A stretch of 64,000 bases of DNA, from the NCBI RefSeq assembly GCF_052425735.1, contig NC_135763.1, positions 35,278,001 to 35,342,000 on the forward strand, written 5' to 3'. A model generated the notes under the pieces. That model worked only from the letters and a program-made list of their open reading frames with translations. It did no database searches and was not told the origin of the DNA. Below are positions 70 to 50,653 of this stretch, piece by piece. Position 1 is the first letter of the stretch. Each line of letters opens with the position of its first letter. This DNA comes from Oculina patagonica. Its lineage: Eukaryota. The position numbers and the translations under genes are program-made.

Positions 70-927
70 ATGGAAGAAAAAAAGGACCAACAGTTGACCA
101 AAAAGGTACGCTTCGATTTGAACGAGGAGGTTTTTCTTATTCCAAGCAAGTGGGATCGACTAAGCAAATGCAAGACTACCAATGCAAGAATCATAGACGC
201 GATGGCGGGCAAACACAAAACTCGCACCGCCTTGGATCGCCGAATTGATGTCAAGGGTAAACAGAACAGAAACAGAAAAACACAAAACTTATCTACGTAC
301 GGCAAGCGCGATTCAAATCCTGAACTTAATGGAAAGCTTTCTGACAACGGCAGGCCGAATTCCACGCCCAATGTAAAGACTAACAGCGCCAGGAAGACTG
401 CACGGTATAAAGAAGGCAACGAAAATACAAACAGCGGGAATTCTACACTTCCCGTCGAAGGAAGGCTAAAGTTTTATCACCGCCCTCCGCAAGAGTTGCC
501 GAAACTAGATCTTGTTTTGCCTAAGATTCCGTACACACCTGATCTTAAAAAGGCAATCGAGAAAGCGCTTCAAAGATCTCGAAGCAGACCTACTTTGGAG
601 AGTGGATTGAACAATACAACTTTGGCTACACAAAAAAATAATTCAGAACTTTCAACTCCACTTCCAAAGGAAAAATGTGAGGGGCTTTTTCAAAGAAGGC
701 TTTCGGACAGTTCTATCAGAATAGGAGATGAAAAACCGATAGAAAAGAAAGAAAACCAAGTCATGCCCAGCGAAGCTAAATTTAGCGAACTTTCTTCTAA
801 TCTTGATGGTTGGAGTCCGTTCTCGGCGTGGAGTTCAAAAGATAGCACCTTGCGATCAAATTCGACAGCGCCTATTACACGAGGGAGATCTATGTCTTCT
901 CTTATACCAAGTAGCATTCTATATTAA
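70..927 (+). CDS. Cluster gene 1: disordered basic protein with N-terminal PP1-docking RVxF motif (KKVRFDLNEEVFLIP)
   Basis: Long ORF (track 52..927); first ATG at 70 in GCCATGG context. Low-complexity S/T/N/K/R composition; KKVRF at 100-114; LPKL and LPKI motifs; RRLS site. Confidence 0.75.
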   Translation: MEEKKDQQLTKKVRFDLNEEVFLIPSKWDRLSKCKTTNARIIDAMAGKHKTRTALDRRIDVKGKQNRNRKTQNLSTYGKRDSNPELNGKLSDNGRPNSTPNVKTNSARKTARYKEGNENTNSGNSTLPVEGRLKFYHRPPQELPKLDLVLPKIPYTPDLKKAIEKALQRSRSRPTLESGLNNTTLATQKNNSELSTPLPKEKCEGLFQRRLSDSSIRIGDEKPIEKKENQVMPSEAKFSELSSNLDGWSPFSAWSSKDSTLRSNSTAPITRGRSMSSLIPSSILY

Positions 928-1375
928 TGTTGTTTTAACCAGTAAGGTAAAATAACATTGCGTGTTTCGAACATTTGTACATATTATGGTGAAACAGCTA
1001 TTGTCCCCTTTGTTTTCTAAGCTGGGACATGTACCCTCACGGAAATTGATGTATTTGCTGTACAAACGTCTATTTCAAAATCATTTTGATGTAAAAATAG
1101 AAATCAAAGTTATGTTGTTGATAATTGTCTATAGAAAAAAGTTAACACTGTGTAGAGATTGAGCGCTAACGTTGGCGAAGTTTGAGAAGCCAGCTTGCTT
1201 TGTTTGGAAAACAAAAGATGAACTTGGACATAGTCTGATAGTAGTTTAGTTGCTTAAAACATCAGAAGAAAAGAATTATCTTATCACATGTATATTTGAA
1301 ATCAAATTATCAACATCACCTTAACATCAACACCACCAACACAGCTAGGTTTATCATTGTCATGTTGTTATTGTT

Positions 1376-1422
<47 letters not shown>
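1376..1422. repeat. (ATC)n microsatellite
   Basis: About 15 perfect ATC units. Confidence 0.95.
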
Positions 1423-1797
1423 GGCATTTCTAAACTGCCAAAAAAAGTTCTTGATAAACACGAGATGTAAGAGGAAAAGTTATAATTTAGTGTTAGCTTG
1501 GATGTAAAATGAATTGTTTTAAAGAAAATTTATTTTGAAATTTTATACATTATTAATGTAAAATAATTTGTTTTGATCTTCAGTCATATCTTGGGTCTCA
1601 GAAAGGAAGAAATTTATTGTAAATGATCTCGCAGAATTCCTTAAGTGTAAAATGAACCAATCTACAAATAAACAAAGAAAAACTAGTTATAATAAGTCAC
1701 TTTATACCAATTAGCTTCTGTTGTGCCAAGCCGTTCAGCCTGGATTCAAAGAATTGTCTGAGCCCTTAGTTTTATCAGGAACGTGCTCAGCAGCGCC

Positions 1798-1810
1798 GTT
1801 ACTTGGCAAC
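1798..1810. promoter_or_regulatory. RFX X-box-like site GTTACTTGGCAAC
   Basis: Matches the GTNRCN(0-3)RGYAAC-type X-box consensus; function untested. Confidence 0.3.
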
Positions 1811-4464: not shown

Positions 4465-5715
4465 ATGGCAGATCTCAAAGAAGACGAATACGACTTATGC
4501 CATTCGAATGACAATTCGACAGACAGCAGTCAGTCATCATTACAAACAGTTCTTGTTACATTTCGTATCGACAAGCCCTCAGCTAAACACATCAAGCGAG
4601 TCAGATTCAACAGCTTGGTTGAAGTGAAATTTATTCCCAGACGCAAGAAAGAAAAGAAGAGAAAGAGCAGGCTTGAGGATGAGGACAAGGAAGATAAATC
4701 ATGTGCGGACAATGCCACAGAGAAAACGAATCACAAAGACAACCCTACTGACAGTAATGGAAAAGAAACAGATATTAAGGGTGAAGTGAGCGTTTGCGAG
4801 CAATGGGTTGCTAAGGCAACTGACAAAGTCCCTGTAACTGGACAAGAGGGTTCGTGCCCTGACAAGGATCCTCAGAAATTCGAAGCAGAGGTAGAGAACG
4901 TATTGGACAAACCGTCTTCGAATCCAGCTTTGAAGGCCGAAACCAACGGGACGGCGACAAGTTTGATACAAGAGCCCACAAATGAAGCTAGTGACCCAGC
5001 TAAAGTGTTCGCTGGTGTTCTCAAATCGCGAAGGACAGTTCGTGAGAGTTACACAACAAATAAAATAACGCTTGGAGAAGACTACATCGGGAATGCGATG
5101 CGACTGACTCCAGCGACATTTTCAATCACGCCAGCGATCCAATTTAATGAATTCCCGGCTCGAAATGCAAAGAGACAGAGCGTACATGAGTTTGGAACCA
5201 AGGCAGTCTGGCGCTTAGAGAAACAAGCTGTCAAATTTTGTCAGGAAGCTGAAGCGCTGATTACGCAAGTCACAGAAAAGAACGCCTATATTCAAGCGAA
5301 ATTAAAACAACATACAGAAACAGTTCTTCTTGCCGGAAATCAGAGACACACTTTTCTCAAGGAGTATGCACAAAGCTCCAGAAAACCGTCGGTTATACCA
5401 GGTATTCCCTCCCTCGGAAAACCTGTTAATCAAGATGTATTTGGTACTAAACCAGTTACGAGGTTTCCGTATATTAACCACAAGAAACAGCAAAGTATCG
5501 TGGGATTGAGCCCGAGGTCATCACCCTCTGAACTTTCCCTACCCCAGCTCTTGTTGCATGACGGGAATGGAGCGCGCAGTCCGCCTGCAACGACTTATGG
5601 GAGAGGGGGATTTACTGACAACAAGCTCGAGCAAGTGAGACCAGAAGAGGGTGCGAATGGGAAACTTTTCTTACATTACTCTTATGGAGCAGCAAAGAAG
5701 TTAGGATTAAGATAA
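4465..5715 (+). CDS. Cluster gene 2: disordered protein with RVxF-phi-phi-R motif (KRVRFNSLVEVKFIPRR)
   Basis: 422-codon ORF, first ATG at 4465. Motif at 4594-4644, followed by a basic NLS-like stretch; FPYI and LPQL motifs; AATAAA at 6197. Confidence 0.8.
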   Translation: MADLKEDEYDLCHSNDNSTDSSQSSLQTVLVTFRIDKPSAKHIKRVRFNSLVEVKFIPRRKKEKKRKSRLEDEDKEDKSCADNATEKTNHKDNPTDSNGKETDIKGEVSVCEQWVAKATDKVPVTGQEGSCPDKDPQKFEAEVENVLDKPSSNPALKAETNGTATSLIQEPTNEASDPAKVFAGVLKSRRTVRESYTTNKITLGEDYIGNAMRLTPATFSITPAIQFNEFPARNAKRQSVHEFGTKAVWRLEKQAVKFCQEAEALITQVTEKNAYIQAKLKQHTETVLLAGNQRHTFLKEYAQSSRKPSVIPGIPSLGKPVNQDVFGTKPVTRFPYINHKKQQSIVGLSPRSSPSELSLPQLLLHDGNGARSPPATTYGRGGFTDNKLEQVRPEEGANGKLFLHYSYGAAKKLGLR

Positions 5716-6089: not shown

Positions 6090-6103
6090 GTTGCCCCGGT
6101 AAC
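6090..6103. promoter_or_regulatory. RFX X-box-like palindrome GTTGCCCCGGTAAC
   Basis: Near-perfect X-box consensus, lying 3' of gene 2. Confidence 0.3.
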
Positions 6104-12950: not shown

Positions 12951-14102
12951 ATGAGCGCAGTGTTTCACCAAGCCGTGCTAGAGGGAGACACAACGAAAGT
13001 GAAATTTATATTGAAATATGGGCAAGGAATACGAGTGAATCAACCGAATAAATATGGCCTCACAGCTCTACAACAAGCATGTGTGGATGGAAATTTAGGA
13101 CTGGCGAACTTTCTTCTCGAGCGCGGAGCGGATTTGAGTCTTGTGGACTCCAATGGACGCACTGCGCTTCATCTCGCCTCTGAGCAAGGGCATTTAGACA
13201 TTGCTAGCTTGCTGGTGAATTCAGCTTGTGCTGATGTGAATGCAAGAAATGGCTGCGGACAAAAGGCGGTTGATGTTGCCGGTAACGACCAAGTCCGAGC
13301 GCTTCTTTCGCAAGCGATGCTCTCGGAGAGTTTCAAACAGAAATGTTCCTTCGCTCAAACCTTGGACGAAGGAGTGAGTTACGAGTTTAAAAACGTTCCA
13401 GGTTGGCGCTATTCTATCTCGAGCACGTCAACAGATTCTGGCGTATCTGAAGACTCTACATACAGCCACGATAGCGGTTATGATTCTAGATACCCAAGCA
13501 GGCATTATCAAGCCGCAAGTTATAATAATTACAGCTGTGGAAACCCTGAGCAAAACGATTATTATGTTACCGAAGCTACACCGTATTATCGCGATCAAAG
13601 AACTGACAAAGAGTTCATTTCTGCCCGGCGAGTAGAACCCTCTAATCACGCTATGTTGACAAAAAGTCATTCATTTACCGGCAGTCGACACGAATACAGT
13701 GTAAAATTGGAAAACCCGGTTGCGGTGGACAGCAAGCAGTCCCTGGGTGGCGAATCCGCGCGATATCGCAGACAACAAAAAATTCGCAAAGACCCTACAA
13801 GAAGAAAGACTGTGACCTTTGGCGAAAATGAATCGTATACTATTTCCCCTCGCGAGGAGCAGCGATATCCTAAGAGTTATTCGCTCAGTCGCCCGCCAAT
13901 TTCAAGCAGTAATAGACCCCCATTACCAGAGACATGGAGAGATTCAACAACCTATGCAACCCGGTTTACGCAGCCCAGGGAAGCAAGCTCCACAAAAGAC
14001 AAGGAAAGACGCTCATCCGTAGACAAGGGTGAAAACCCTCGGAAAGAGGGAAAGTCTAAAAAGCACATTCTATCAGGATTCTTGGAAAAATACGTACATT
14101 AG
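12951..14102 (+). CDS. Cluster gene 3: ankyrin-repeat protein (MYPT/PPP1R12-PPP1R27/NRARP-like repeats) with disordered tail carrying RVxF and a DSGxxS degron
   Basis: Ankyrin consensus segments GLTALQQACVDGN, GRTALHLASEQGHLDIA and GQKAVDVA. RRKTVTF at 13800-13820; DSGYDS at 13470-13487. First in-frame ATG at 12951; AATAAA at 14751. Confidence 0.9.
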   Translation: MSAVFHQAVLEGDTTKVKFILKYGQGIRVNQPNKYGLTALQQACVDGNLGLANFLLERGADLSLVDSNGRTALHLASEQGHLDIASLLVNSACADVNARNGCGQKAVDVAGNDQVRALLSQAMLSESFKQKCSFAQTLDEGVSYEFKNVPGWRYSISSTSTDSGVSEDSTYSHDSGYDSRYPSRHYQAASYNNYSCGNPEQNDYYVTEATPYYRDQRTDKEFISARRVEPSNHAMLTKSHSFTGSRHEYSVKLENPVAVDSKQSLGGESARYRRQQKIRKDPTRRKTVTFGENESYTISPREEQRYPKSYSLSRPPISSSNRPPLPETWRDSTTYATRFTQPREASSTKDKERRSSVDKGENPRKEGKSKKHILSGFLEKYVH

Positions 14103-17659: not shown

Positions 17660-18664
17660 ATGGCTGCCTCTCGCGACGTTTACTCCGAAGACGACAACTT
17701 TCTCATTGGGGACGATTTCAGCACAGATCGTCACCGCCGAGAGGCAAGGCAACTTCATCGCAGCGAATTTAAAACAATTCGTCGCGAAGCTCATTTCGCA
17801 AGGTACAGAAACTCTTTTCTAAAATGTGATTTAGATCAAACAATTGATCGAATTGAACAGGGAAGGCGTTTGAGATCGGCAGAACTTGAGCGTGCAAAAG
17901 CTGCTATTACGAAGCAAGCTGAAAGTAGAAGTAAAGTTAGCCGTCATAGACTAAATGAAAACGATACAAAGATGTATTCTGATACGAAATCAAATGGAAA
18001 ACTTGTCAGCAATGTTTCGACGAATAGGGAGGCTAAAACCAAAGATCTTGGCACTGAAAGCCGATTGACAAGACAAAGCCAGCAAGGTTTTAGAAACAGC
18101 ATTACTACGTTAAGTTTGTCGCGCGCGTCTTCAGTGACAGGAAAACGCGCATGTGATTTGGCGGGAGAAATTAGGCAAGTAACTCCCTCGATGAGCACGG
18201 GCAATGGTAAAGCTAGCTCACTGGAAAATCATTCAGAAAACGCTGGAACGGCAGACGAGAAGGAATTTGAGATGAAGATCCCCGCTTCTGTTTCGGAAAC
18301 TAAATCGGATTCGGAGTGGAATTCAGCAGCAAAGAGCCCATCAGCTAAATCTGTTATCGAAAAGACTTCTCTTTTGAACCGAAGAAAGGGCAGTGCAACT
18401 AGTTTTCAGGATACAGACGCCAAGAAAATACAAACCCAGTCCGCACACGAACGGTGGATGTGGAAGGAGTTTGATAAGATAATGAAAGGTTTTTCGGATT
18501 TCCTGCAGATTGAGCATAAATCAGTCAACTTGAGAAGCGAGGCTGCTGTAGACAAAGAGACGAAGCTAAGGCCACCTCAAAATGTAAAGCGTAATTCCCT
18601 CAATACTCTAAGTCCACTATACTTTCGTCATGGAATTTCTGATCAAATAGCTTTTCGTTTTTAG
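17660..18664 (+). CDS. Cluster gene 4: disordered protein with N-terminal coiled-coil segment
   Basis: 334-aa ATG ORF. NSFLKCDLDQTIDRI coiled-coil motif shared with genes 6 and 7; RRKGS and KRNS sites; C-terminal amphipathic WMWKEFDKIMKGF. Confidence 0.8.
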   Translation: MAASRDVYSEDDNFLIGDDFSTDRHRREARQLHRSEFKTIRREAHFARYRNSFLKCDLDQTIDRIEQGRRLRSAELERAKAAITKQAESRSKVSRHRLNENDTKMYSDTKSNGKLVSNVSTNREAKTKDLGTESRLTRQSQQGFRNSITTLSLSRASSVTGKRACDLAGEIRQVTPSMSTGNGKASSLENHSENAGTADEKEFEMKIPASVSETKSDSEWNSAAKSPSAKSVIEKTSLLNRRKGSATSFQDTDAKKIQTQSAHERWMWKEFDKIMKGFSDFLQIEHKSVNLRSEAAVDKETKLRPPQNVKRNSLNTLSPLYFRHGISDQIAFRF

Positions 18665-21364: not shown

Positions 21365-21946
21365 ATGAACTTGGCCGACGGACGCTCCGAAGTCTCGCTA
21401 TCTCCAACCCGAAGACAGAACAGATCTAGAGCGCATTCAGAACCGTTTAGAACTCGTAAAACTCGTTCGGTCTGGAATTCATCGAGGAATTCGGGTTCGC
21501 CAGACTCGCGACAAACTAAATCATGCCGCTCTGAGATCGACATGACCTTGATGAACGAGCAAAACAGAGAGAAGCTCATCGAAACGTTTTTACCCGATCT
21601 GAGGAAGAATCACACTCGAATGGGGTTCCTGCATCGTGTAAGGCCGTTTAATCTCAATCAAGAGAAGCTGAAGACTGTACAAATTCGCGCAAAAACCGCC
21701 TCGTACAACAGGGACCTTCGCGAACATTCAGACATATCTTTCGGCTGTGGTAGAAAGGCCGCAAACAGCATAACTCCGCGGCCTAGATGGGCTGTGAAGC
21801 CTATACCCATGAACTCAGCGAACGACAGACTCTGCCCTGATGCTCCGCCGCAAATGGTAGCGTTTGTGAAACGACAGCAATGGAATTACAGTGATGGTAG
21901 ATTATCTCTTGACAGACCACTGCCGAAGAGATCACTTGACAAGTAG
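21365..21946 (+). CDS. Cluster gene 5: Arg/Ser-rich disordered protein
   Basis: ORF 21335..21946, first ATG at 21365 just after a TATA-like box; FLPDL motif, RSRAHS; GC content higher than the flanks. Confidence 0.7.
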   Translation: MNLADGRSEVSLSPTRRQNRSRAHSEPFRTRKTRSVWNSSRNSGSPDSRQTKSCRSEIDMTLMNEQNREKLIETFLPDLRKNHTRMGFLHRVRPFNLNQEKLKTVQIRAKTASYNRDLREHSDISFGCGRKAANSITPRPRWAVKPIPMNSANDRLCPDAPPQMVAFVKRQQWNYSDGRLSLDRPLPKRSLDK

Positions 21947-23951: not shown

Positions 23952-24749
23952 TCACCGCGTATAGCGAATTCTGTCCGGAGAAACTCGTTTTGTTCTTGAA
24001 TTTCTTCGTTGTTGTTTAGGCTCTCGAATACTCTTCGTCTCACTCAAACACTGCTCAAGTTTCATAAACCTTGGATCATCGAGACATTTTTGCGTTTTTT
24101 CTCGAGAAAGTTTTAGCATTTCTGGTACACTTGGCTGTTTTCGAAGCGGTGGCTTTCTCTTAGACAAAGCAGCGGGTTCTCGAAATGCTCCTTCGTTAGC
24201 GTGAATTGGCGGTAACTGATTCGGAGCTAAGTCTTCTAACTCAGGTGCTTGAGTGCCTGAAAGTTTTTTCCTGCTGCCGGCCACCGGGTTGGCGCTGGCT
24301 TCGTTTGATGGTCTATTTTGAACTGCTAATCGAACAAGCGTTATCGCCTTTTCCCAACGCCCCTTCGCCGCTTTGTTATGCCCTACGACTTCACCACCCA
24401 GGTTTGCGTGATTTGTCTCCAAGTTCGTAGCTACAATTGATCTTTTCCTTGCATCAATCGGCGGTAACTGCTCGCTACCTTGAGCATGTTTGCTTTCTCG
24501 ACGGTCAGGGAGCGTTCGCGGCCTTTCTTCGGACGCCGAAACTTGTTTCGTGGCAAATTCTAACTGTCTGTAAGTCATGTACTTATCCTGCCTGAATTGA
24601 TGTTTAGATAAAGTGTCTAAGCGCGTGTTGAGGGCCCGATCTTCGTAGGCATTCTCCTTGAGTATTGCGTTTCCAACCTTGTTCTTTAGCCGCATTTCGC
24701 CAGTCTTGCTGATTCTAATGAGCGGGTATCTTGACGAACTCACACTCAT
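23952..24749 (-). CDS. Cluster gene 6: coiled-coil + 2x LPPI + CaM-binding-like helix + DPRF motif
   Basis: 265-aa ATG ORF containing ENAYEDRALNTRLDTL, QLPPID, QLPPIH, KGRWEKAITLVRLAV and DDPRFMKL (DPRF at 24066-24077). Confidence 0.85.
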   Translation of the reverse strand: MSVSSSRYPLIRISKTGEMRLKNKVGNAILKENAYEDRALNTRLDTLSKHQFRQDKYMTYRQLEFATKQVSASEERPRTLPDRRESKHAQGSEQLPPIDARKRSIVATNLETNHANLGGEVVGHNKAAKGRWEKAITLVRLAVQNRPSNEASANPVAGSRKKLSGTQAPELEDLAPNQLPPIHANEGAFREPAALSKRKPPLRKQPSVPEMLKLSREKTQKCLDDPRFMKLEQCLSETKSIREPKQQRRNSRTKRVSPDRIRYTR

Positions 24750-29800: not shown

Positions 29801-29815
29801 GTTGCTTTAGGCAAC
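29801..29815. promoter_or_regulatory. RFX X-box-like site GTTGCTTTAGGCAAC immediately upstream of gene 7
   Basis: Palindromic GTTGC..GCAAC ending 34 nt before ATG 29849. Confidence 0.35.
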
Positions 29816-29848: not shown

Positions 29849-30763
29849 ATGGATTTTGAAGGCGCAAGACGGAACGCGGACGAGAGACTCAATCAAGAGC
29901 TTATTAGAATCCGCAATCTTCCGAAACGAAGCAAGATCAAAATAGTCAACAAGTACGGCTTGAAACATGCGAGTCACACCAACGCAGGATTGCTGAAGGA
30001 ATTAGAGATCAACCTGGGTGTCATTTCTCGAGAAAAGAAGAGGGTGGCCAACGAATGTGATAAAAGACAGAGAGACTTTACTGAAATTCAAAGGAAATCT
30101 CTGTCGAAATTTCTACCTCCTTTAGCACAGGAAGAAGAAGAAGTCGAAAAACAAACGATTAAGAGAAAACCGCAAAGACAGCAAAGAAGCACTGCTGTTT
30201 TGGATCAAACACCAATGTGGTTGAAAGGTCGAAGGGAGTCAATAAGTGAAAAGAAAAGAGAAATTCTTTTAGACTTGACTGCAAAGAGCAAGGAGAGAAC
30301 GTTTAAAATTATTTCTAAGAACAACAAAAAGACCTCTATTGGGGTGCCGTTGCCGCCTATTCGTGATTCTGAACTCGAGGAGGATGCATGGATAACTCGA
30401 CTAAATCATCCGCGGAAAAACGCATTTGCTGGGAGTTGCTTCCCGTTTTTGCTAGCAGAAGAAAACGAAAATGAAAGAGACCAAGAGAAATATCACGGGA
30501 AAAGACTGCATCAGAATCAACAATGGCCACATCCTCCGCCAAACAAAGACAGTGCAAATTTGAAAGCAAGAACGTTTCGAGGCACTGTCTACGAAAAGGT
30601 TCTTAAAATGCCAGATCCCGCTAAAATCCCTCACCTAAATCCTAGAGACCCTAAACTTTATCAAGTTGTCATGAAAGTTCGGAAACGAAAGGTTTCCAAA
30701 TTAGAAAATTCGGATGCAGTCGTTGCACGAAAGAATACCGTGTTCACAAGACACTGGAAATGA
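29849..30763 (+). CDS. Cluster gene 7: coiled-coil + LPPL/LPPI disordered basic protein
   Basis: 304-aa ATG ORF containing TNAGLLKELEINLGVI...RQRDF, FLPPL, PLPPIRDSELEE, RRES and RDPKL. Confidence 0.85.
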   Translation: MDFEGARRNADERLNQELIRIRNLPKRSKIKIVNKYGLKHASHTNAGLLKELEINLGVISREKKRVANECDKRQRDFTEIQRKSLSKFLPPLAQEEEEVEKQTIKRKPQRQQRSTAVLDQTPMWLKGRRESISEKKREILLDLTAKSKERTFKIISKNNKKTSIGVPLPPIRDSELEEDAWITRLNHPRKNAFAGSCFPFLLAEENENERDQEKYHGKRLHQNQQWPHPPPNKDSANLKARTFRGTVYEKVLKMPDPAKIPHLNPRDPKLYQVVMKVRKRKVSKLENSDAVVARKNTVFTRHWK

Positions 30764-33257: not shown

Positions 33258-33824
33258 CTATCGTGCACTCCGAAGTTGCATAATTGTGTATCGCGAGTGA
33301 AGCTGTGCAGGTTTTGAGATATCTAGAACGGCTGTAGTCCCCGAACGTGTATCATTGCCATTCAATATCTCAGGCTGCTTAGACTGCTTAAGATCACGTT
33401 CCAAGCCTCTAGAGAAAGCTTGAAACTTTCTCTCTTCTTGAGTTCTAAAACTCCCATACGTCGCCTTATTAAACACAGGCGCGGCTACATCGGCACCCTT
33501 ATTTCCCAGTATATAAGGAAGGTATTGACTTGGCGTAGTTCGTCGTTCCATGGGAGTCGCACTTTTATTTTTGATGCTGTTTCCATCGTGAATTGTCTTT
33601 GTTTGAATTATGTCGACAGAGTTAACTCTCGTCAATCGCAGAACCTCCCGTGATGCCAGCCTTTCGGGTTCGCGCAAACTTGGGTTGATTATTTTGTCTG
33701 CATTTACCGCCTGTGCGTTTATGACCTTTATCCTGTCATTGTAGCAAAGTCTATAAGGTGTTCTTTTCTCGTTATTATCAAAATCAACAGCACATTCTTG
33801 GTCAAACTTTAAACTTGAATCCAT
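33258..33824 (-). CDS. Cluster gene 8: disordered protein with LPYI motif
   Basis: ORF 33258..33854, first in-frame ATG at 33824; YLPYI and RRTT. An out-of-frame upstream ATG near 33870 makes the start uncertain. Confidence 0.6.
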   Translation of the reverse strand: MDSSLKFDQECAVDFDNNEKRTPYRLCYNDRIKVINAQAVNADKIINPSLREPERLASREVLRLTRVNSVDIIQTKTIHDGNSIKNKSATPMERRTTPSQYLPYILGNKGADVAAPVFNKATYGSFRTQEERKFQAFSRGLERDLKQSKQPEILNGNDTRSGTTAVLDISKPAQLHSRYTIMQLRSAR

Positions 33825-35977: not shown

Positions 35978-36481
35978 TTATAGTCTCTGATTAACAACGT
36001 TAAGGTTTGTCAACTTTGGCAGTTTTAATCTCACAGATTGTGACTCTGTCTCTCTTCTAGGTTCACTGCGTTCACTGTTCGTAAATCCATTCTCTTCGCC
36101 TTCCAGATTATCGTTTCTGAGCGCTAAAGAACATCCGTAATGGTGAGAAGTTGCTTTGTTCTCTTCGCCAGAACGACCATTGTTGGTACGAATTTCGTCT
36201 GATAACAATTCACTACCTCCAGTATTGTACATTGCTCTATGTGCTTCTGGATTCGTAATGCAAGGAAGTTCGTAAATTGGCGGGAATAGAAGTTTGTTGG
36301 TTGCGTTATTTGGGCGTTTGTTGGCAGCTATGTCTTCATTCCGTTCGCTAAATGGAGCAATATCTCTCCAAGTACACATTTGTCTTTGTCGATTCTTCTG
36401 TAAGCGCTCCAATTTTTTCGGCTCGATTTTACCATAAGAGATGCAATGGCAAAATTTCTCACTTCTCTTCTTGTTTCTCAT
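35978..36481 (-). CDS. Cluster gene 9: disordered protein with FPPIYELPCI and LKLPKL motifs
   Basis: ORF 35978..36490, ATG at 36481; three [LF]Px[IL] motifs. Confidence 0.6.
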   Translation of the reverse strand: MRNKKRSEKFCHCISYGKIEPKKLERLQKNRQRQMCTWRDIAPFSERNEDIAANKRPNNATNKLLFPPIYELPCITNPEAHRAMYNTGGSELLSDEIRTNNGRSGEENKATSHHYGCSLALRNDNLEGEENGFTNSERSEPRRETESQSVRLKLPKLTNLNVVNQRL

Positions 36482-38186: not shown

Positions 38187-38791
38187 ATGGAGAATAAATC
38201 GTCAAGGAAATTGCCGGATAAACATGGCGGAAGGCACGAATTCGAAAGTGAGAATTATCACAGCGAAAACAAAACTACTACTGTTGATAATAACCACAAG
38301 AGCGATCAAACAAGCTCCCAGCATACGTCTGGCCGCGCAATCTCAAATTTTCGACACTTAGTTAATGTTTATCACACCATTGAGAAGAATGGTTTCACAG
38401 TTGATAGTAAACCATCCCAAGATGCTCCAGACAATTCTGACACGGAATGCGAGTCTAATGATGAAACACAAGATCACAAGAGACGAGTTGTGTTAAAGGG
38501 AGCCGATTCAAGCGAAAGGGACTCTTGTGTTCTCAGCGAATCTGTCAACGTCGTTCGTATTTTTATGAAAGGAATCCATTACTCGATCCGAGATTTACCC
38601 GCCTTATCGAGCAACTTGTTCCTGTGAGGAATGGGATACAAGTAGACAAGAAGAAGTTTTCCTCTGTAAGGAAAGAAAACGTTTCTGATAATAGCGACGG
38701 AATATGCTTCAAAGACCTCTGCCTTAACGAAACTTGTCGGTTAGTGTTTAAAATCATGAATAAGGGGAATGATGATCATCCCAAGAAATGA
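38187..38791 (+). pseudogene. Cluster gene 10: DPRF-family member split by a frameshift (pseudogene or assembly error)
   Basis: Frame 1 (38187..38627) has SNFRHLVN. The family motif LDPRFTRLIEQLVP (38582-38623) is in a different frame, open from 38465 to the stop at 38791. Confidence 0.7.
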
Positions 38792-40261: not shown

Positions 40262-40480
40262 GGGAGCCCTGGTAGCCTAATGCTTAGTTGGTTGGACTTC
40301 GTATATTGAGAGTTGGTTGTTCGAGCCTTACTAGGGCCCGAGTCACCCGAGTGTTGTGTTCTCACAGTACTCTATCTACCGAGAGGTATAAATAGGCACC
40401 GACGAAATGACAGTGCCGGCAACCTGACAGAATGCTGCGTGTCGACGTCTGTGATAGAGCAACATCCCATCCGGAGGGAG
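40262..40480 (+). mobile_element. Degenerate tRNA-derived SINE remnant
   Basis: GGTAGCCTAATG..GTTCGAGCC boxes followed by a GTGTTGTGTTCT..GGTATAAATAGGCACC core-like segment. Confidence 0.45.
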
Positions 40481-40589
40481 TAACTTGAGTTTGGCCGCGA
40501 CAACTTCATACTACTTGAGTTAAGCGTCCACGTTTTGAGCTACCATGTTCCGTAAAAGAATGCAGACACGGTATTTTTAACATGCATGT

Positions 40590-41291
40590 TTAGCAATCAA
40601 TAGGTGCCATAGGTGTCAGTGAGCGTAACAGGCTTTGAAATCTTGGGTCAAGTTTTGCATCCAATGATGAAAGTTGACTCTTTACTTCGACAGCCTTTGA
40701 TATTGTACTGGGCCGTACATTGGAATGATTGGATCTTCCTCTTGCAGGAATCGAGTCCGCACCTCTACGGCTCATTACGCTAGCTACTCCATTTGAGGAC
40801 TCCTTCAGTTTGAATTCTTTTACCGTTTGGTGAGTTTCTAAGTTTTTCATCCAAATGAAACTCTCAGACTTCTTTTCTCTCGTGTTAAAGAGTTTAAGCT
40901 TTCCAATGCTTAATACTTTTCTCGTCGGTTCGTTTTTCCAATAACTTATGCTAACGGGACTCATTCTCTCTAAGTATTCTAAATATCGTAACTTTTCTCT
41001 GTGAAACTTCCAGCCATTCAGCTTCCTTTCTTCAGCTCCGTCCTTCTTGAGTTTAGCAAGACCCTTTACTTTCTCTAATCGTTCCTCCTTCGTTAGATTT
41101 TTGTCAGCACAATCCTTACGCTGTTCACTTATCTCATACATTAATGGACGATTCCTCGCTATTTGCACGAACCTCAGAACTTTGAGAAGTTTGTTCACAA
41201 CATGTTGAAACGATTTTCTTCTCTTTGGTTTCGGCCAAACAGGCGAAACATGCACAACAGATTTAGAATTTGAACTTAATAACTCTGCCAT
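40590..41291 (-). CDS. Cluster gene 11: HVxPxWP / CaM-binding-like helix / DPRF family
   Basis: ORF 40590..41336, ATG at 41291; HVSPVWP-KRRKSFQHVVNKLLKVLRFVQ; LDPRFQSLLRSLTP (DPRF at 40638-40649). Confidence 0.85.
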   Translation of the reverse strand: MAELLSSNSKSVVHVSPVWPKPKRRKSFQHVVNKLLKVLRFVQIARNRPLMYEISEQRKDCADKNLTKEERLEKVKGLAKLKKDGAEERKLNGWKFHREKLRYLEYLERMSPVSISYWKNEPTRKVLSIGKLKLFNTREKKSESFIWMKNLETHQTVKEFKLKESSNGVASVMSRRGADSIPARGRSNHSNVRPSTISKAVEVKSQLSSLDAKLDPRFQSLLRSLTPMAPIDC

Positions 41292-42291: not shown

Positions 42292-43176
42292 TTAAATGTA
42301 AAAGGTAGTTGGAACATTTTTCTCGTTGTACTTTGGCTCCATGGTTTCCAGCCATTTCTCATGCAAACTCTTCCCACTTAATCTGCTTTGTAAAGTTCTT
42401 TCTCTCCCTTTAGTCGAACTAATGTTTCGACCCGTACCTATGTTTCTGAATTCTGTTTCACTTCTGTTTGACGGGGGTACAAGAGATGTCAGCAATCGTT
42501 CGAAGCGAGGGTCATTAACTGGCCGTTTAGCTTCTTTGTCGTTTCTGTATATTTGTGGCAAATAAATCGCATCATTTCTTTGTGGAAAACCAACCTCGTC
42601 CTCATTACTTCGTCTGGGCGTATGAGCCTTGCTAAGGTTTCTATGTTGATCTTTCGTTGATGTACTATCCTCAATTTTCAAAGTATCTCGGAGTTTCTCG
42701 GTGGTCATTTGCAAGTCTCTTATGAGCGTTTGGCTTGCGAAATTGTTTGAATTTCCCTTGGTGACGACCATGCTCGTTCTAGGTAGTTTTTGCCATTCTC
42801 GTAACTTGCACCAAGCGTTTTTCTTTCTTTCTTCCCTGAGAAAGGCCTCCATTTGAATCTCGTAAATGCGCTGATGTTTTTTCCTTTGTTCCTCGTGAAA
42901 ATTTCTGGTGAGAGTTACGATATTGTCTTCATCGTCCACCTTCTCGGCCACTTCCGACACGAAATCTTTGAAAGTCGGATTTATACTTTGTAGAAATTTA
43001 AAAAGGATCATTTTATTTCGCACGAGCCGCCGGAAATTTGCTCGTCTCGCTTTCACATTTTCAATTCTCTTCTCTGGAGGCCAAATCGGAGTAACATGTG
43101 GAATTAAAGGGAAAATGACTTCTTCTGTGCTGTTCAAGTTCATTGCAATTATTTCCCTTCTTGATTGCACCGCCAT
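42292..43176 (-). CDS. Cluster gene 12: tandem paralog of gene 11
   Basis: ORF 42292..43197, ATG at 43176; HVTPIWP, RRANFRRLVRNKMILFKFLQ, YLPQIY, NDPRFERLLTSLVP (DPRF at 42502-42513). Confidence 0.85.
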   Translation of the reverse strand: MAVQSRREIIAMNLNSTEEVIFPLIPHVTPIWPPEKRIENVKARRANFRRLVRNKMILFKFLQSINPTFKDFVSEVAEKVDDEDNIVTLTRNFHEEQRKKHQRIYEIQMEAFLREERKKNAWCKLREWQKLPRTSMVVTKGNSNNFASQTLIRDLQMTTEKLRDTLKIEDSTSTKDQHRNLSKAHTPRRSNEDEVGFPQRNDAIYLPQIYRNDKEAKRPVNDPRFERLLTSLVPPSNRSETEFRNIGTGRNISSTKGRERTLQSRLSGKSLHEKWLETMEPKYNEKNVPTTFYI

Positions 43177-46100
43177 ATTTCTTAATATACTTTTCACTTC
43201 GCGGGAGAGAGATTAATATATTTGCGTCCAGAAGCTATTGTTCAAAATCTGCTTAGAAACAAAAGCCCCATTATAAAGACAATAATTTAGCAAAGACCAG
43301 CTAGGTCAATATGAATTTACACTGTTTGGCGTCCAATAATTTTTTCCTAAGATTATAGGTTTTTGTCGGTGTTGTATTTTGTTGTGTTCGTTAACAGCAA
43401 TTACTTTAACAGATTTCGATTAACGTAGTATCAATAAAACTAACGAACAAACTCATGTGATTGGCGGAAAGCAAACTTTAGACCATGGTTCACTTATCTG
43501 GTGTCGCAAAAGCAAATAAAACTTTAATAATATTTTCTTGGTAGGCGCATTATTTCAGAACTGTTATTTGCACGTCTAACAATTAATTACAATAATTCAC
43601 GGACGAAATTCAATAACACTCTTGTGCGAACAAATTTTGTTGTGAAATTAATGTTATGGCGAGCTTCCAAAAAATGAAAACAGTATTTTTCAGTAAGAAA
43701 TTTTGTTATTTTATCTATCTCACAATTTTAGCACAAGCTTAATTCAGAGCCTTTCAGTGTTAAAAACGCCTTTCAATGTTAACATGATCGGACTACTGAA
43801 CAATGGATTAAATTATTTATATTCTGTCAAGTTCCGCTCATTTACTTTCGTCTGTTCTGGGTCGCCTCTGTGTCGCTCTGCTAACTAAAATTTTCCTTAA
43901 ACTTAAATTCAGTTCGATGCTTTTAAATTGCCCAAATTACCGGCCAAAAACTATAATGCGTGGATTGCAGGTGGCATGCACTGAATAAAATAGCTTTCGT
44001 GCATGGAAGAGACAGAATTTTAAATTTTGACAGTATCTTTAAAAAAGTTTGACAGTACCCTTTTTGACAGTATCTTTAAAAGGGGCTTTATCACGAATTT
44101 TAACAGATTTTTGAACAGCTAAAATTTATATTTGTGTCGTAGAAACATAAAAATAACATGAAAATATTAAAGGACCGCAGCCACCACACCTTCACACTCG
44201 GAATATTTTATCTTTTTACATTTTTACCCGTCGAAGGCTGTAGTTCAAACAGCCGAAAGCTTGTATTTTTAAAGTTTTTAAGCCAGAGATCGTTTTCAAA
44301 ATTTTATAATAAAAATAACAGTCCATTTCTATTGACAACTGCTTTATTAGAGCACTGAAACTGTAGTTAATAAGCGTCTTTGGCTGCAGATGGCTAGGAT
44401 AGAAATGAATTACAACTTGAAAAATTGAGGCTAAATGTTCAAGTTAAAATCAATAATATTACATTCTACTAAAATTAAAATAAAAAGTTGGATAATCTAA
44501 TAATCTTAATCCTAATAATCTTAGACATCATGTAACACAGCGTTGAATTTCCCAACTCGGTTTTTTAAAATCACCGCTTTGTCATAGCGAATAAGCTGGA
44601 CTGTGAGTCCACACGAAACATTCTTGGAAAAACGATTCTAATTAACTGAGAAATGCATTCCCAACGCCATGGATACTTTTTATTTTGCTGCAAGGTCGTT
44701 TGTTTTTATTTTCTATAACAATGCACTCGACGTAAACCTTGAGAACATTAGTAAGGGAACCTTCCCCCAGCTATGTGGTTTTGACACACTTATAAAGTTT
44801 TTCATTCATTAGCGAATCTCCACAATAAGAAATAAAACGAAATGTAGTGGATCAAGGGATCAACCGTCTTCTTGTTTATAAAGTGTACTGTCTTGACAAT
44901 GAGCTCCACATAGTTGCATGGGAGGTGGGGGTTAACGAAAAATTAAATTTCTAGAAGGTATGCATGGATTTGCGATTGTTATTTAGCAACCCTTTGCTCA
45001 CGAAATGCCCTATAACCTCCTGAGAGAAGCCCTTTGACCTCTACGCGAGGCGGGGCTTTTGGCTGAAGCAAATTTTGCGGTGGCTTTGGGGTGGCTTTAG
45101 TTAATTGTCCGTGTTTAAAAGAAATTTGTTCTAATTGGTAAGAAAACGATTTTGATTAAAAACATACTGAGTAAATCACCTGGAAGCTATATACTGTATA
45201 CAAGGGTCAAGTGTAAAATACTCAGAGATTATGTGCTCTTATTGGTCTATTCATTTCATCACTGAAGCAATAGACTACGCATTTCAAAAGAGACAATTAC
45301 TTTATTTCACATAATCAGTAAAAGAATACACATATCGATAAAAAGATTAAGAGCTTAAAAAAACACAGATGTTATCCTTATATAAAAAAGTAAATAAAAT
45401 ATCTTTGTGTTGGCGAGAATGGCGTCTTAAAATCATTTCATCTAGGTAGCCTTTGCTCTAAATCATTTCAATGATCCCTCATCGTTGCTAAAACCTATTT
45501 AGGATGTTGAAATGACTCACGAAAATCTCTCTTATCTTACTAGCCTATGGCTCGTCATTTAACACTAAACTCCGCTTATCTAGTGTTTTTAAGCTAACAT
45601 CACTCATAATCACGGTGTGGATAAATCATAAATTACGTAATCTAATACTTAAACTAATTTGGGGACACATCAATAGACAGATATAAACACTAAGCAGCGT
45701 TCTTCATTTGTTCCGTACTGTTGTATTGGTTTTTTGTTGTTTCACTAGGAGACCAAGCAAAGTATAGAAGAGCTTTAAAAAAGAACGTTAAGCATAGTTA
45801 TATGTTAATGAACGGTTGCCTCCCTTTCCACACTTTGAAATCCCATATATGGCAACCTATCTGGCTGCCAGGTTATTCTTAGACTACGTATAAATAGAAA
45901 TGCTGTTTTCCGGGCATCATTTTGAATTATATTTCTTCTGTTTTGCTGCATCGTAAAACAATGCTTTTAAAAACATAGAACGGTTTTTCTTAATTTATTT
46001 TTCAAATATACCGACCACCCACAGCTGTTTTCGTATGCCAACAATTGTTTCGATTTAATAACGAATCCTAATCCCTGTGTTTTCCGATTATCAAAACACG

Positions 46101-46615: not shown

Positions 46616-47464
46616 ATGGGCAAGAAAAAAACAAAGGGACATCGAAAGGCATCTCGCAGTGACAAGCGAATGCAAAAACTTTACAACGATGCGATAAAAG
46701 AAGTAAAGAAAAGAAATATTAACTTGGACGACTTGCCGGCTAAAAACGCTGACGATGTCGATGAAGCCAGCGAGGAACGTGAGGAGGACGAGCACCTTGA
46801 CACACAGAAGACGAGAAAAAAGCCAAAACAAGTCCTCAAAGAAACACTGACGAAACAAGAACAGTTAAGAAAGCCTAGAGTTTCACTTTCTGTACCGGTG
46901 TCAAAGCTCGTTCCTTTCAAACCAGATGAAAAAGGATTAGAATTTCCTAGAGACTTCCGCCGAGACCCAACATCTCTATCGTGGATTCCGCGTAATTCGC
47001 CGGGATTCCCGCTGTTTGCACCTGAACAATACAATGCAAGACGATCACCCAGTTCTGAATATGGTGATGAATTTGAGAAAACTATTTCTTGCAATGATCT
47101 CCCTGCACAAAGCAATGATCTAAGCGTCGACGAAATTTTGCAGGTGTTGCCTCTTCGTATTGGGGACGAAGACAGTGAGTGCCTGCCAGAGGCGAGCACC
47201 CGCTCATCACAGCTCCCGCCAATTTACCGTCAAGATTTATGGCAGGAAACTATGCGCCGAGCGTCAACGTCTTCGCGCTCAATTCCCGCCAAACAGGACG
47301 CGTGGAGCATTCGTGATCCAGCGTCATTGATGGTTGGGAGACAAGAGCTTTATTCAAGAGAAAAATTCAGGTCAACCATCAGTCTCGCTGAGAGACGATT
47401 CCGCTTGAGAGCTGCAAGCTCCAGCGCCGTGTTGCCTTCAAGGGACGAATGTTTTAACCTATAA
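46616..47464 (+). CDS. Cluster gene 13: disordered protein with LPPI motif and RRxS sites
   Basis: 282-aa ATG ORF; basic N-terminus, acidic patch, QLPPIYR, RRAS, RKAS. Confidence 0.8.
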   Translation: MGKKKTKGHRKASRSDKRMQKLYNDAIKEVKKRNINLDDLPAKNADDVDEASEEREEDEHLDTQKTRKKPKQVLKETLTKQEQLRKPRVSLSVPVSKLVPFKPDEKGLEFPRDFRRDPTSLSWIPRNSPGFPLFAPEQYNARRSPSSEYGDEFEKTISCNDLPAQSNDLSVDEILQVLPLRIGDEDSECLPEASTRSSQLPPIYRQDLWQETMRRASTSSRSIPAKQDAWSIRDPASLMVGRQELYSREKFRSTISLAERRFRLRAASSSAVLPSRDECFNL

Positions 47465-47943
47465 AAGATACCGGCTGTAGTGTAATTATGGGCGAATTTT
47501 ACTTAGGAGTTCCTCTATTTGTAACCAAACGTCTACCCTACAAATGGTGATGCATACTGTCCCATGCCACTACTGGAACAACGCAATCACAGTATGCAAC
47601 ACTGGTACTGACAAGAAAATAAAAGACAACGGTCGCTTCCAGTGGATTCACGGAGTGATTCTAAAATTTTTACTTTTAACTCATAACGTTTTTAAATCCA
47701 GCTATGTTCATCTGATAAACAACTCCTTTCAGATTTTTACAGTGTGTACAGCAACATATATAGCCAACCTTCTTTCTCATTTTACTGATAACTCGGAACT
47801 CTGGAACTCTCTACCAAAGGCTTATTTTAATTTTTTCTAGTCTATAAAACGTTGTATATGTTATTTACTATTGTAATATTTACTTCTGTTATATATTAGT
47901 TTATTTGAAAGGGCAATGGGAATTTTGATTTAAAAATTTTCAA

Positions 47944-47996
<53 letters not shown>
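47944..47996. repeat. (CAT)n microsatellite, possibly the tail of a LINE remnant (WNSLP near 47800)
   Basis: About 17 CAT units; a degenerate ELWNSLP peptide upstream. Confidence 0.85.
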
Positions 47997-49660
47997 GTCA
48001 ACACTGTTCCAACTCAGTGATGATTTCTTATCTTCAATCTTCAAGGTCAATATTGACTTAAAATTCCGGTAGAAAAAAGTCGTATTTACTTGGGCGTTTC
48101 TTAGTCTTCACAATAATTGACAGAATAATGTTAATAACAAGCAATCAATCTCTAAAATTCGGAAAGTTTCTTAACTTAATGTAACTAACTCACGGATTGA
48201 AGGCAAATTTAGACATACGAAACGGCCACCGAATTGAGTGATATATAAATAAAACCAGTAAAAACATTGAAAGAACATTTCAATATAACGCAGCAAATAC
48301 AAATAAAGGGCACAACGGCAAACATTTAAGAAGATTAAAGCACATTGCAATATGGGCTTTTGTAAAACTGCTAGGCTTTGGACCTATTTGTTTGTAATGA
48401 AGCTATGGTTTTGCCATTTAGATACGTAGGAGCAATTTCTAATAAAACTGGGCGTGTGATAAAACAATACATCTCCATTCAAGACCTTGGAGAAAACTGA
48501 TAGGACTCCGTATGGACTCAAGATGAAGAAATACTAGTGGCTTCATCTTTAGTAAAAAGTGTGTGGGGGTTTATTAAAGATGACCCTTTTTTAATAATAC
48601 TCAGACTTGTTTTTAAATAAAAAAATAAATAAGTATAAGTACCTGATTACTGCAGTACGTTTCTGAGCAAGCTTGGATAAAATTGCGGAAAGCGGAAAGG
48701 ATGAAAAGAACGGTGTGCTGACAGAGGACCCACTGGGTGTTTCGGTCGGAAAAGAATTCCCTTACGTTGTTTTACAAACCAGTTAAAAGTACGAGAGGAT
48801 TTTTATGCAAGTCAAGTTTATTAGTTTATAAGGTTTTTGTTCTATTAAGATGACACAATTTCTGTTAGTAAAGACGTCATATGACGTTGTTAAATCCGCC
48901 ATCTTGGATTTCACTATTTTCTCTCAGTCTGAAAATAGTGGAAACTGATACAAAATCAAGCCAGAATGCTAAATGAAATATATAAAATGTGCTTATTCTG
49001 CACTCCTTCATAAGAAGACTGGAAAAATTAAAGAATTATGTCAAAAAAGGCGAAATTTGGCCAAACTTGCAGCCTTAATGCGGTTGCCAAGACAGCGTCA
49101 AAAATCAATAACACACAGAGGGATTTGTGAACATTGAAAATTGCAAAAAAAAACCTAGAAAGAGGGGGCGTCCAAAGTCAGTATAACGGTAATTCCTCAT
49201 ACCCATAGCTTTAAGAGCACCTCAAATAACGGCTGTTTCTAAGTTTTTTCAAATTGATGGCAGTTACGGTCACACCAGGAAATTAGATTTTAAAACAGTG
49301 CTATGGAGAAAGAGTGCATTTTACTACCGAGTTGAATTATTGAAATACAATATCAAATGCAAAATATTTGGAGGGAATGCTTCTTTTTGCCCCATGCTGG
49401 GCAAGTTAGTTTCTACAATATGTGACTGGATTGTTTCGACAGTCTGCGCAGTTGATCTTTAAAAAATGCCCGAATACAAATACAGAAGCATAAAGAATTA
49501 GGAAGATATTTTTAAATCTGATCGATCAATTAATTACTGCAATAATAAATTTACTTACAAAGACTGATTCAATCTGAAAACGATGTCAACAATGTTTATT
49601 ACTGCTTTTGAAGTATTCCCTTAAGACCATTCCTTAACTTATTGCATGCCTCCAGTTGCG

Positions 49661-50653
49661 TCAGTGGGTGGTTAGTTCAAAGTGAATCTTTCTGGTTTTC
49701 TTGCTGCAATCCTTCACAGAATTCCTTTCCCCGTCGCCATCTCGCGTGCCATTCACGTCTACGGGACGATCAAATAACATTTTCTTCTTGATCAACACTG
49801 GTGCCCAATAAACTTGGTATTTTTTGCCGGCAACTGTACCAGTCTTCTTGTCTCTGCATTCATAAACGCTTTTACCGAATCTTGATTGCAGATAATTGTT
49901 AAACTTTTTGCTTGAGTTGGCGTAAGCGGACTTAACGCGATATTCAGTTTTGTTAATTGACGGAAACGAATCTTCGTATGAGTCTCCATGGAAACGCTCT
50001 TTCACGAGGTCAACGGCACTTTGTTTGGTTAATTTCTTCGTTTGGACATCGCTGTGGTCTTCAATGACAACTTTTATGTGGCTTTTTGGCAAATCGTTAC
50101 TGTCATCGCTTGAATCTGGCCTAGAACCCTGTTCACCTGTCGATGCTAGCTTCTTTCCTTCCACGACAAGAGTTTTAATTGGCTGGTCTTCAGTGATTGA
50201 CAGTGCTTGTAAATCAGGAATGCAAGGAAGTCGAAACTTGTGTTTTGTCACCCTCGCTTGTACGTAGGTACATCCAGGTGCCGAGCTTGATCGCTTTCTC
50301 GTCAAAATGCTGTTTTCAATTTCGTTGACCTTTACGACATCTTTATCCATCGCTATGAGTTTGGGAAATGCGCTCGACTCAGCCGGCGAGTTGGTTGCCA
50401 ATGGCAACATCTCTGTCAATGACTTGAGTCTGCTGTTTTGTCCCTTCCGCGGCGGTCGCCAAATCTTTTCATCGATTACTGCTTGAGATTTCTTTTGTTT
50501 CTCGGCGTTTTCTTTTCCATACTCTCCTATGATTTTCTCATTTATTGAGCTAGAAATGCCTTCCGAGTCTTCGGGATCTTTAGGCTGTGGTAGTTTCACT
50601 TGTAAACACTCTTTAGAATCCAGACGAACCTTTCTAATTGACAAGAAACTCAT
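49661..50653 (-). CDS. Cluster gene 14: disordered protein with C-terminal RVxF (RKIHF) and LPCI motif
   Basis: ORF 49661..50713. Acceptor TTCTTTGCAG at 50666 precedes ATG 50653; putative 5' UTR intron 51145-50666 (AG|GTAAAC). RKRSSS, FRLPCIPD, RKIHF at 49679-49693. Confidence 0.8.
   Translation of the reverse strand: MSFLSIRKVRLDSKECLQVKLPQPKDPEDSEGISSSINEKIIGEYGKENAEKQKKSQAVIDEKIWRPPRKGQNSRLKSLTEMLPLATNSPAESSAFPKLIAMDKDVVKVNEIENSILTRKRSSSAPGCTYVQARVTKHKFRLPCIPDLQALSITEDQPIKTLVVEGKKLASTGEQGSRPDSSDDSNDLPKSHIKVVIEDHSDVQTKKLTKQSAVDLVKERFHGDSYEDSFPSINKTEYRVKSAYANSSKKFNNYLQSRFGKSVYECRDKKTGTVAGKKYQVYWAPVLIKKKMLFDRPVDVNGTRDGDGERNSVKDCSKKTRKIHFELTTH

Follow-up and report, generated by a model that had tools for sequence, protein, structure and literature searches.

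A conserved block of small, mostly unrelated genes for basic, disordered proteins in Oculina patagonica and other anthozoans

We analysed a stretch of 64,000 nucleotides from the stony coral Oculina patagonica (NCBI RefSeq assembly GCF_052425735.1, contig NC_135763.1, positions 35,278,001 to 35,342,000 of the forward strand), called the window below, in which positions 70-50653 (51 kb) hold a block of 14 open reading frames (ORFs) of 146-416 amino acids (aa), spaced 1-8 kb apart. An ORF scan of the window with the standard genetic code recovered, at the coordinates listed below, all 14 ORFs that an initial annotation, made from the letters alone, had claimed on both strands. They are labelled here g01-g09 (genes 1-9 of that annotation), g9b, g10 and g11 (genes 10, 11 and 12), g13 and g14 (genes 13 and 14). 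The neighbouring genes were multi-exon, as had been proposed: the MRP-L47 and RUN-domain genes were found 10 kb to the left, and an EF-hand gene built of short exon-like ORFs was found on the right. Because the MRP-L47 and RUN-domain genes sit to the left of g01, the block is bounded on that side, which refuted the suggestion that the array continues leftwards. It is nearly certain that the 14 genes at window positions 70-50653 are real and protein-coding and that the block they form is bounded.

The gene g01 (70..927, +) encodes a basic protein of 285 aa with LPKL/LPKI and an N-terminal KKVRF...EVFLIP, in which an RVxF site is combined with a hydrophobic pair, and g02 (4465..5715, +) encodes 416 aa with KRVRF...EVKFIP, its exact product being recorded in the NCBI assembly. 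The g03 product (12951..14102, +) has ankyrin repeats at residues 1-125, matched by Pfam ankyrin-repeat families, and a disordered tail with RRKTVTFGE. The 334-aa product of g04 (17660..18664, +) contains the conserved blocks FLIG..RRE.RQ at the N-terminus and WMW..FD..LYF[KR]HG at the C-terminus, and g05 (21365..21946, +; 193 aa), the best conserved gene of the block, carries an invariant FLPD[LI]R. The gene g06 (23952..24749; 265 aa), on the minus strand, carries LPP[IL] at two invariant sites, together with a basic helix and a DPRFxKLExCL module. It is followed by g07 (29849..30763, +; 304 aa), with a conserved VPLPPI.D, by g08 (33258..33824, -; 188 aa) and by g09 (35978..36481, -; 167 aa), with a conserved L[FL]PPI. 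Next come g9b (38187..38791, +), g10 (40590..41291, -) and g11 (42292..43176, -; 294 aa), all belonging to a DPRF group, and the last of them contains FPLIPHVTPIWP, a basic helix, LPQIY and DPRFERLL. The block ends with g13 (46616..47464, +; 282 aa), which has a conserved LPP[IL]Y[RK], and g14 (49661..50653, -; 330 aa), with conserved R[LF]Px[IL] and RRSxSAP and an unconserved C-terminal RKIHF. A 134-aa ATG ORF at 9424-9828 (-), inside the 7-kb gap between g02 and g03, is outside the 14-gene set.

One coding exon had been assigned to every gene, and 13 of the 14 are indeed single open frames; g9b is split across two. Its ATG ORF (38187-38627) is out of frame with a second frame at 38465-38791, which carries DPRFTRLIEQLVP...ICFKDLCL and overlaps the first out of register at about 38465-38627. 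A search for an intron yielded no convincing splice sites joining the two frames, and the counterpart in a distant relative, on a 716-kb contig of ENA assembly ERZ25073755 merged from four fetches (ctgA), is one open frame that runs from Met through the DPRF module to the same C-terminal block. Because ctgA holds one continuous frame, the break in g9b is either a real frameshift or an assembly or sequencing error. The neighbouring NCBI model ACROYT_G023667 (442 aa) bridges intergenic space to link the greater part of g11 with the last 190 residues of g10, and it looks like a mis-fusion of the two, because orthologues show g10 and g11 as separate genes. Upstream of g11, a related coral lacks a 436-bp stretch (44092-44527) on a contig that is 92% identical (L002/L003); the boundaries of this stretch are not GT-AG, which ruled out an intron, and it is an insertion or deletion between species.

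Several observations indicated that these genes are genuine. Nine exact ORF translations are recorded as gene products in the NCBI assembly, with near-identical copies in other public assemblies, and the recorded names among the cluster members are ACROYT_G023667 and ACROYT_G023668. Between g01 and a 97%-identical relative there were 25 synonymous and 15 non-synonymous differences (dN/dS 0.15), and between g11 and a 92% relative dN/dS was 0.27; by these ratios, both genes are under purifying selection. Transcription was checked for g05 and g06 in the contigs of four RNA-labelled runs from four studies. Such contigs cover about 21100-25100 colinearly, with single contigs spanning 22084-25104 and 23371-24928, and cover g05 over about 21100-22460 without splice joints. 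Coverage drops to about zero in the unique flanks at 20782-21169 and 25244-25631. In one run, 62% of the sampled words of 21000-25000 were present, compared with 6% of those of 40000-44000, and this difference argues that the contigs represent RNA rather than contaminating DNA. Both g05 and g06 are transcribed, without splice joints. Farther out, at 20394-20781 and 25632-26000, contig word depth in the RNA runs reached hundreds to 22000 with many loose ends, and these stretches on either side of g05 and g06 resemble repeats that are expressed or present in high copy number.

The proteins are of one unusual type. The 13 complete products have isoelectric points of 9.0-11.1 and grand average of hydropathy values of -0.7 to -1.15, and neither a signal peptide nor a hydrophobic (membrane) span was found in any of them. 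Thirteen of the 14 proteins were without a Pfam match, the sole match being that of g03, whose N-terminus holds three to four ankyrin repeats, and the alignment members of g05 and g06 gave no Pfam match either. Profile searches of the PDB with the g06 and g11 families were empty, and g03 matched generic ankyrin proteins only. Beyond these ankyrin repeats, no Pfam or PDB relatives and no named bilaterian relatives were found, and our literature search found no paper on the Nematostella accessions, on the metagenome sample identifiers, on these genes or on such a cluster. Structures were modelled for g05 and g06. AlphaFold placed helices at residues 24-73, 127-144 and 208-237 of g06, using an alignment of 13 sequences, and left the rest disordered (predicted template modelling score 0.22). 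For g05 it predicted no fold (mean predicted local distance difference test score 46), despite about 53% coral-anemone identity over 180 residues. Conserved basic amphipathic helices were observed in g06, g10 and g11 (FRRLVRNKMILFKFLQ in g11; RWEKAITLVRLAVQNR in g06, the latter modelled as helix 127-144), so that the helix part of an earlier claim of calmodulin-binding-like helices was upheld by the orthologue alignments and the g06 model. As modelled, the proteins conserve far more than motifs yet would not fold alone, as is typically seen for proteins whose folding takes place on a partner or a lattice.

To understand how the genes are related, we compared them with each other. The initial annotation had described one tandem-expanded family that is not globally alignable, and only the second half of this description agreed with the data. 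In BLASTP all-vs-all, g10 and g11 were the only significant pair (25% identity over 232 aa, E 6e-5). When hhalign was run on 78 pairs of family alignments built from orthologues, g10-g11 (P 8e-8) and g06-g11 (P 4e-4) alone stood out, and the g06-g11 match was local, with 29 columns across LPxI...DPRFxxL. A common order of elements, namely a basic amphipathic helix, LPxI and DPRFxxLxxxL, is present in g06, g9b, g10 and g11, and this shared arrangement suggests that the four are plausibly old paralogues. Only these four were demonstrably related; for common descent of the other ten genes, neither BLASTP all-vs-all nor the 78 hhalign pairs gave evidence. The KxVRF...EVxxIP held by both g01 and g02 is a 15-residue similarity that was not significant in either search, and the coiled-coil signature that had been ascribed to genes 4, 6 and 7 in common found no significant similarity in hhalign. 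Conservation is also not confined to motifs, as had been supposed, since each gene keeps its own blocks of 20-140 aa shared with its orthologues. By these alignments, most of the genes represent separate families, and each of these has an orthologue of its own.

The order of these genes was found to be conserved in other deep anthozoan lineages. A g11-family profile searched against 1.84 billion proteins retrieved 14 representatives only, none outside this gene group, and the two most distant matches led to two loci with the same neighbours, a metagenome scaffold (L005) and ctgA, which were compared together with Nematostella vectensis. Homologues of g11 (n=34) are all coral-like where named, and those of g06 (n=47) include Nematostella XP_001637082. 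On L005, the order g14(+) g13(-) g11(+) g10(+) is the Oculina order and orientation on the other strand. On ctgA, a COesterase gene is followed by g14(+), g13(-), g11(+) and a g10-like gene (+), and a second series, g04(+) g05(+) g06(-) g07(+) g08(-) g09(-) and a g9b-like gene (+), is followed by an MMP-like gene. These two sub-blocks keep their internal order and orientation, and g14-g13-g11-g10 has moved as a unit. In Nematostella, where the block lies at 1.683-1.704 Mb of OW051987.1 and g06 is LOC5516978, a g11-like gene (+), a g9b-like DPRF gene (-), g08(+), g07(-), g06(+), g05(-), g04(-) and g03(-) match Oculina exactly. The locus tags OS493_006344, 006345 and 006350 of Desmophyllum, corresponding to g05, g06 and g11, agree with the same block.

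Identities between Nematostella and Oculina are 47-48% for g03, 53% for g05, 47% for g06, 59% for the N-terminal 100 aa of g07 and 26% for g08. The genes g04 and g08 have syntenic orthologues on ctgA as well (33% identity for g08), g09 has one on ctgA, and g13 (33-37% identical) and g14 have them on both ctgA and L005. The Nematostella models of g03, g05 and g06 are single-exon, and those of g04 and g07 have one intron each. Three deep clades were resolved in the g06 tree, namely stony corals, a Nematostella-like group and a ctgA-like group. In total, the order and orientation of 11 of the 14 genes recur in Nematostella, in two other deep anthozoan lineages, or in both. The flanks differ, with MRP-L47/RUN and EF-hand genes in Oculina, COesterase and MMP genes on ctgA, and COesterase and L7Ae genes on L005, and no cross matches were found among them. 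Because the flanking genes differ between species, it is the block, and not the wider neighbourhood, that is conserved. Judged from gene order, the block is ancient, most of its order having been shared with sea anemones over hundreds of millions of years, and the description of the array as old was thereby corroborated. The families seem to be restricted to anthozoans, as far as the homologues found indicate.

Two local features of the other loci were also observed. The first g11-like ORF of ctgA (L004:10001-11467, 488 aa, P0063) ends with a second g04-type C-terminus, WMWDRFD...LYFKHG, which by its sequence is a local duplication or fusion beside the true g04 orthologue. In Nematostella, a 649-aa intronless 'proteoglycan 4' gene (L013:3707-5656) lies between g07 and g08 and has no counterpart in the Oculina block.

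Many of these otherwise unrelated proteins share a short motif. Motif counts were compared with 2000 composition-preserving shuffles of the block proteins. The pattern [LF]Px[IL], which had been noticed in ten genes, was confirmed there with 20 instances (2.7+/-1.6 expected; no shuffle reached 20), and [LF]PPI was observed 5 times, compared with 0.07 expected in shuffles. The motif DPRFxxL, earlier assigned to genes 6, 10, 11 and 12, is present in g06, g9b, g10 and g11, with three instances plus that of g9b in its other frame and none in the shuffles. Since these motifs had been chosen after seeing the data, an unbiased scan was run over all four-position patterns in an eight-class alphabet. 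Its top pattern was hydrophobic-P-x-hydrophobic (hP.h; 28 instances vs 10, z 5.2). In 400 shuffles, the maximum z had its 95th percentile at 4.11, which this pattern exceeded, and reached 5.43 at most; hPPh ranked third.

Comparisons of orthologues further showed that the motif, which we call the LPP[I/L] peg, forms a conserved island in surroundings of variable, disordered sequence. Neither LPP[IL] site of g06 varies among 13 species, within stretches that could not otherwise be aligned, and the same invariance is seen across 14 sequences for FLPD[LI]R of g05. Distant orthologues also retain g07 VPLPPI, g09 L[FL]PPI, g13 LPP[IL]Y[RK] and g14 R[LF]Px[IL], as well as g11 FPLI and LPQI. Among the testable [LF]Px[IL] instances, 11 of 16 were retained in distant orthologues, and motif positions were retained in 89% of distant-orthologue cells, compared with 50% where these residue types occur at other positions of the proteins concerned. 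The alignments and this retention test support the earlier proposal that the LPxI and DPRF motifs are kept by selection, and they indicate that the LPP[I/L] peg is a genuine motif on which selection acts in eight families that are otherwise unrelated. Two known docking motifs were tried and rejected as identities for the peg. Of the 10 conserved instances, 9 lack the acidic position 6 of the PP2A-B56 motif LxxIxE, and the sole E at this position, in g09 FPPIYE, is not retained by the ctgA orthologue. In ANKRA2 and RFXANK, the ankyrin repeats are described as reading PxLPxI/L (Xu et al. 2012, Sci Signal 5:ra39, via PMC5655499), and no peg instance has the first proline of this motif (EQLPPI, NQLPPI, VPLPPI, SQLPPI, FRLPCI).

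The evidence for the other motifs of the initial annotation was mixed. With RVxF defined as [RK]-x(0,1)-[VI]-{P}-[FW] in a disordered region, sites are present in the four genes for which they had been claimed (g01 KKVRF, g02 KRVRF, g03 RKTVTF, g14 RKIHF), and there were 7 overlapping matches in 4 genes, compared with 2.7 matches in 2.1 genes in shuffles (p 0.04 and 0.15), so that the number of genes is within chance. The g14 site is missing from both distant orthologues. The g03 site, RRKTVTFGE in Oculina and of the form RR[KR]TVTFGE, is invariant between Oculina and Nematostella, and because of this invariance between coral and anemone a PP1-docking role for g03 is credible. Basophilic-kinase sites, which had been reported in nearly all genes, occur in 11 as R[RK]x[ST], and this enrichment was only marginal (6.6 genes expected, p 0.02; 17 sites vs 9.2 expected, p 0.0135). 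For R[RK]xS alone, 13 sites were observed, compared with 5.8 in shuffles (p 0.003). In the unbiased scan, basic-basic-x-polar (S, T, N or Q as the polar residue), which includes RRxS, ranked fifth and was not significant family-wise. Conserved sites of this kind include RRSxSAP in g14 and, in g06, an R[RK]R[ST] stretch that comes after the first LPPI.

A pattern scan for RFX X-box-like palindromes (GTTGCC, 0-3 bases, RGYAAC) found six in the window, at about 1795-1809, 4806-4819, 6090-6103, 13275-13286, 29800-29814 and 50394-50408, all inside the block, compared with 0.43 expected in Markov simulations. Three of the six fall inside coding regions, and another precedes the g07 start codon by 35-49 nt. 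The orthologous loci of ctgA and Nematostella have one each and are not enriched. Ciliary regulation through RFX X-boxes was rejected on these grounds.

We favour a reading in which this ancient block encodes products that act together, dock or fold on one common partner by means of the peg, and are regulated as a unit, and we give it a probability of roughly 0.5. The description of the block is near-certain, and the mechanism is much weaker. Under the mechanism, the block proteins would act together, with a single shared partner that recognises the LPP[I/L] peg and on which they would dock or fold. Their docking would probably be tuned by phosphorylation at basophilic-kinase sites, such as RRSxSAP of g14 and the R[RK]R[ST] stretch that follows the first LPPI of g06. 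PP1 might be recruited via RVxF by the ankyrin protein g03, perhaps also by g01 and g02, and would thereby modulate docking, and the gene order would have been kept because the block would be regulated as a unit.

Several observations weigh against this reading. The peg matches no catalogued docking motif that was compared with it. Exact four-residue patterns were not shared more widely than in shuffles, which leaves the signal at the degenerate level only; the background consisted of shuffles that preserve composition only, rather than of natural disordered proteins of this genome. The enrichment of RVxF and RRxS is weak. With regard to co-regulation, no upstream 8-mer was shared above the level of shuffles across 35 orthologous promoters, and the over-represented X-box-like palindromes, half of them coding and unenriched at orthologous loci, count against it. 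The genes g10 and g11 were barely present in a run rich in g05 and g06, which speaks against tight co-expression. No distant orthologues of g01 and g02 were found in the loci examined, where Nematostella was covered as far as g03, so that these two genes are only candidate members of the ancient block.

An unlikely alternative is that these are lineage-specific structural proteins lining a cytoskeletal lattice, for example the ciliary or flagellar microtubules of ciliated coral epithelia or sperm, with the peg as a repeated lattice contact. Very basic, extended, strongly conserved proteins without a predicted fold are what lattice-folding proteins look like, and contigs of g05/g06 had word depths of about 13-210 in the four RNA-labelled coral runs. 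The weak language-model (ESM Atlas) neighbours, at 0.71-0.83, are the testis or cilia proteins CIMIP4/TEX33, CFAP77, SPATA6, DUF5528 and DUF5520, but the neighbour scores of g11, g05 and g13 (0.69-0.83) are no higher than shuffled proteins reach. The surplus of X-box-like palindromes in the window would also fit such a role, but half of them lie inside Oculina coding sequence and the orthologous loci show no surplus. Core axonemal proteins are ancient, whereas these families seem anthozoan-restricted, and, apart from the ankyrin match of g03, no relative was found in Pfam, nor did the g06 and g11 profiles find one among all PDB chains, a set expected to include axoneme structures.

It is rather improbable that the genes have no common function and are unrelated orphans held together passively, as bystanders of a long-range regulatory landscape or in a region of low rearrangement, with hydrophobic-P-x-hydrophobic being general to disordered sequence. 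The lack of detectable homology among most members, the lack of a shared upstream word and the unequal representation of g05/g06 and g10/g11 in one RNA-labelled run are consistent with this explanation. It accounts poorly for a motif that is selectively retained in eight families and was the top pattern of the unbiased scan, for the same unusual physico-chemical type of all members, and for flanks that changed while the block stayed, with g14-g13-g11-g10 moving as a unit on ctgA.

The proposal of the initial annotation, that the proteins are a combinatorial set of cAMP/Ca2+-switchable phosphatase adaptors pairing RVxF with PP1, [LF]Px[IL] with B56, the helix with calmodulin and RRxS with PKA, is more doubtful still, since the elements in its favour (the conserved RVxF of g03, RVxF with a hydrophobic pair in g01 and g02, the mild enrichment of R[RK]x[ST] and the conserved basic helices of g06, g10 and g11 as putative calmodulin binders) are set against an RVxF that is present in 4 of 14 genes, not enriched by gene count and unconserved in g14, conserved pegs of which 9 of the 10 lack the acidic position that B56 needs, and long private conserved blocks in each protein, not motifs only.

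The favoured reading, in which the block proteins share one partner through the peg, can be extended by a speculation that we hold to be very improbable, namely that the block encodes its own adaptor together with the clients. By analogy with ANKRA2 and RFXANK, whose ankyrin repeats read PxLPxI/L, the ankyrin repeats of g03 might read the LPP[I/L] pegs of eight neighbours, its RVxF might bring PP1 to the basophilic-kinase phosphosites, and the unit might have been kept since before the coral-anemone split.

Whatever its function, the block consists of about a dozen orphan genes of one odd protein type, most with a conserved peg, across three deep anthozoan lineages, and it provides a concrete handle on 'hypothetical proteins' that annotation has left unnamed, with two of them fused in at least one case, ACROYT_G023667. 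The genetically tractable Nematostella holds the same block, and the idea of a common partner is testable there. If a single reader domain for LPP[I/L] does exist, it would form a new motif-domain pair. What is new here is a conserved microsyntenic cluster of mostly unrelated, motif-bearing disordered proteins.

Compared with the ligands of ANKRA2 and RFXANK, the pegs have a similar L-P-x-[IL] core in disordered sequence, of the kind read by an ankyrin groove, and the block holds an ankyrin gene, g03; unlike those ligands, the pegs are without the proline two residues before the leucine, and the g03 ankyrin domain is not specifically similar. The B56 motif LxxIxE has the same spacing from L/F to I/L, with proline favoured at position 2, but its defining acidic position 6 occurs only in g09 and was lost in the ctgA orthologue. 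Among the RVxF interactors of PP1, such as MYPT/PPP1R12, the likeness is that g01-g03 carry [RK][RK]V/TxF in disordered sequence, with a hydrophobic pair downstream in g01 and g02, and that g03 pairs ankyrin repeats with a conserved RVxF. In MYPT, however, the RVxF precedes the ankyrin repeats, whereas g03 has it some 170 residues beyond them; orthology of g03 to a named PP1 regulator was not found, its PDB matches being generic ankyrin proteins, and PP1 binding is predicted.

At the level of the locus, vertebrates have clusters of single-coding-exon genes for disordered proteins, including the epidermal differentiation complex, KRTAP and SCPP. Like these, the Oculina block is compact, with many small genes of one coding exon, disordered products, shared short motifs and conserved synteny. 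Those clusters are paralogue arrays grown by duplication and encode extracellular or cornified proteins, whereas the Oculina block is made of mostly unrelated genes for basic intracellular proteins and is found in Anthozoa. Conserved microsyntenic blocks, such as genomic regulatory blocks and co-regulated clusters, typically combine a developmental regulator with many-intron bystanders. As in these, the order and orientation of unrelated genes have been kept for very long while the flanks changed; unlike in these, the members of the Oculina block are small, mostly intronless, lineage-restricted and of one physico-chemical type, with a shared peptide motif. In animals, it is rare for a cluster of non-homologous genes to be conserved, and such clusters usually point to shared regulation or function.

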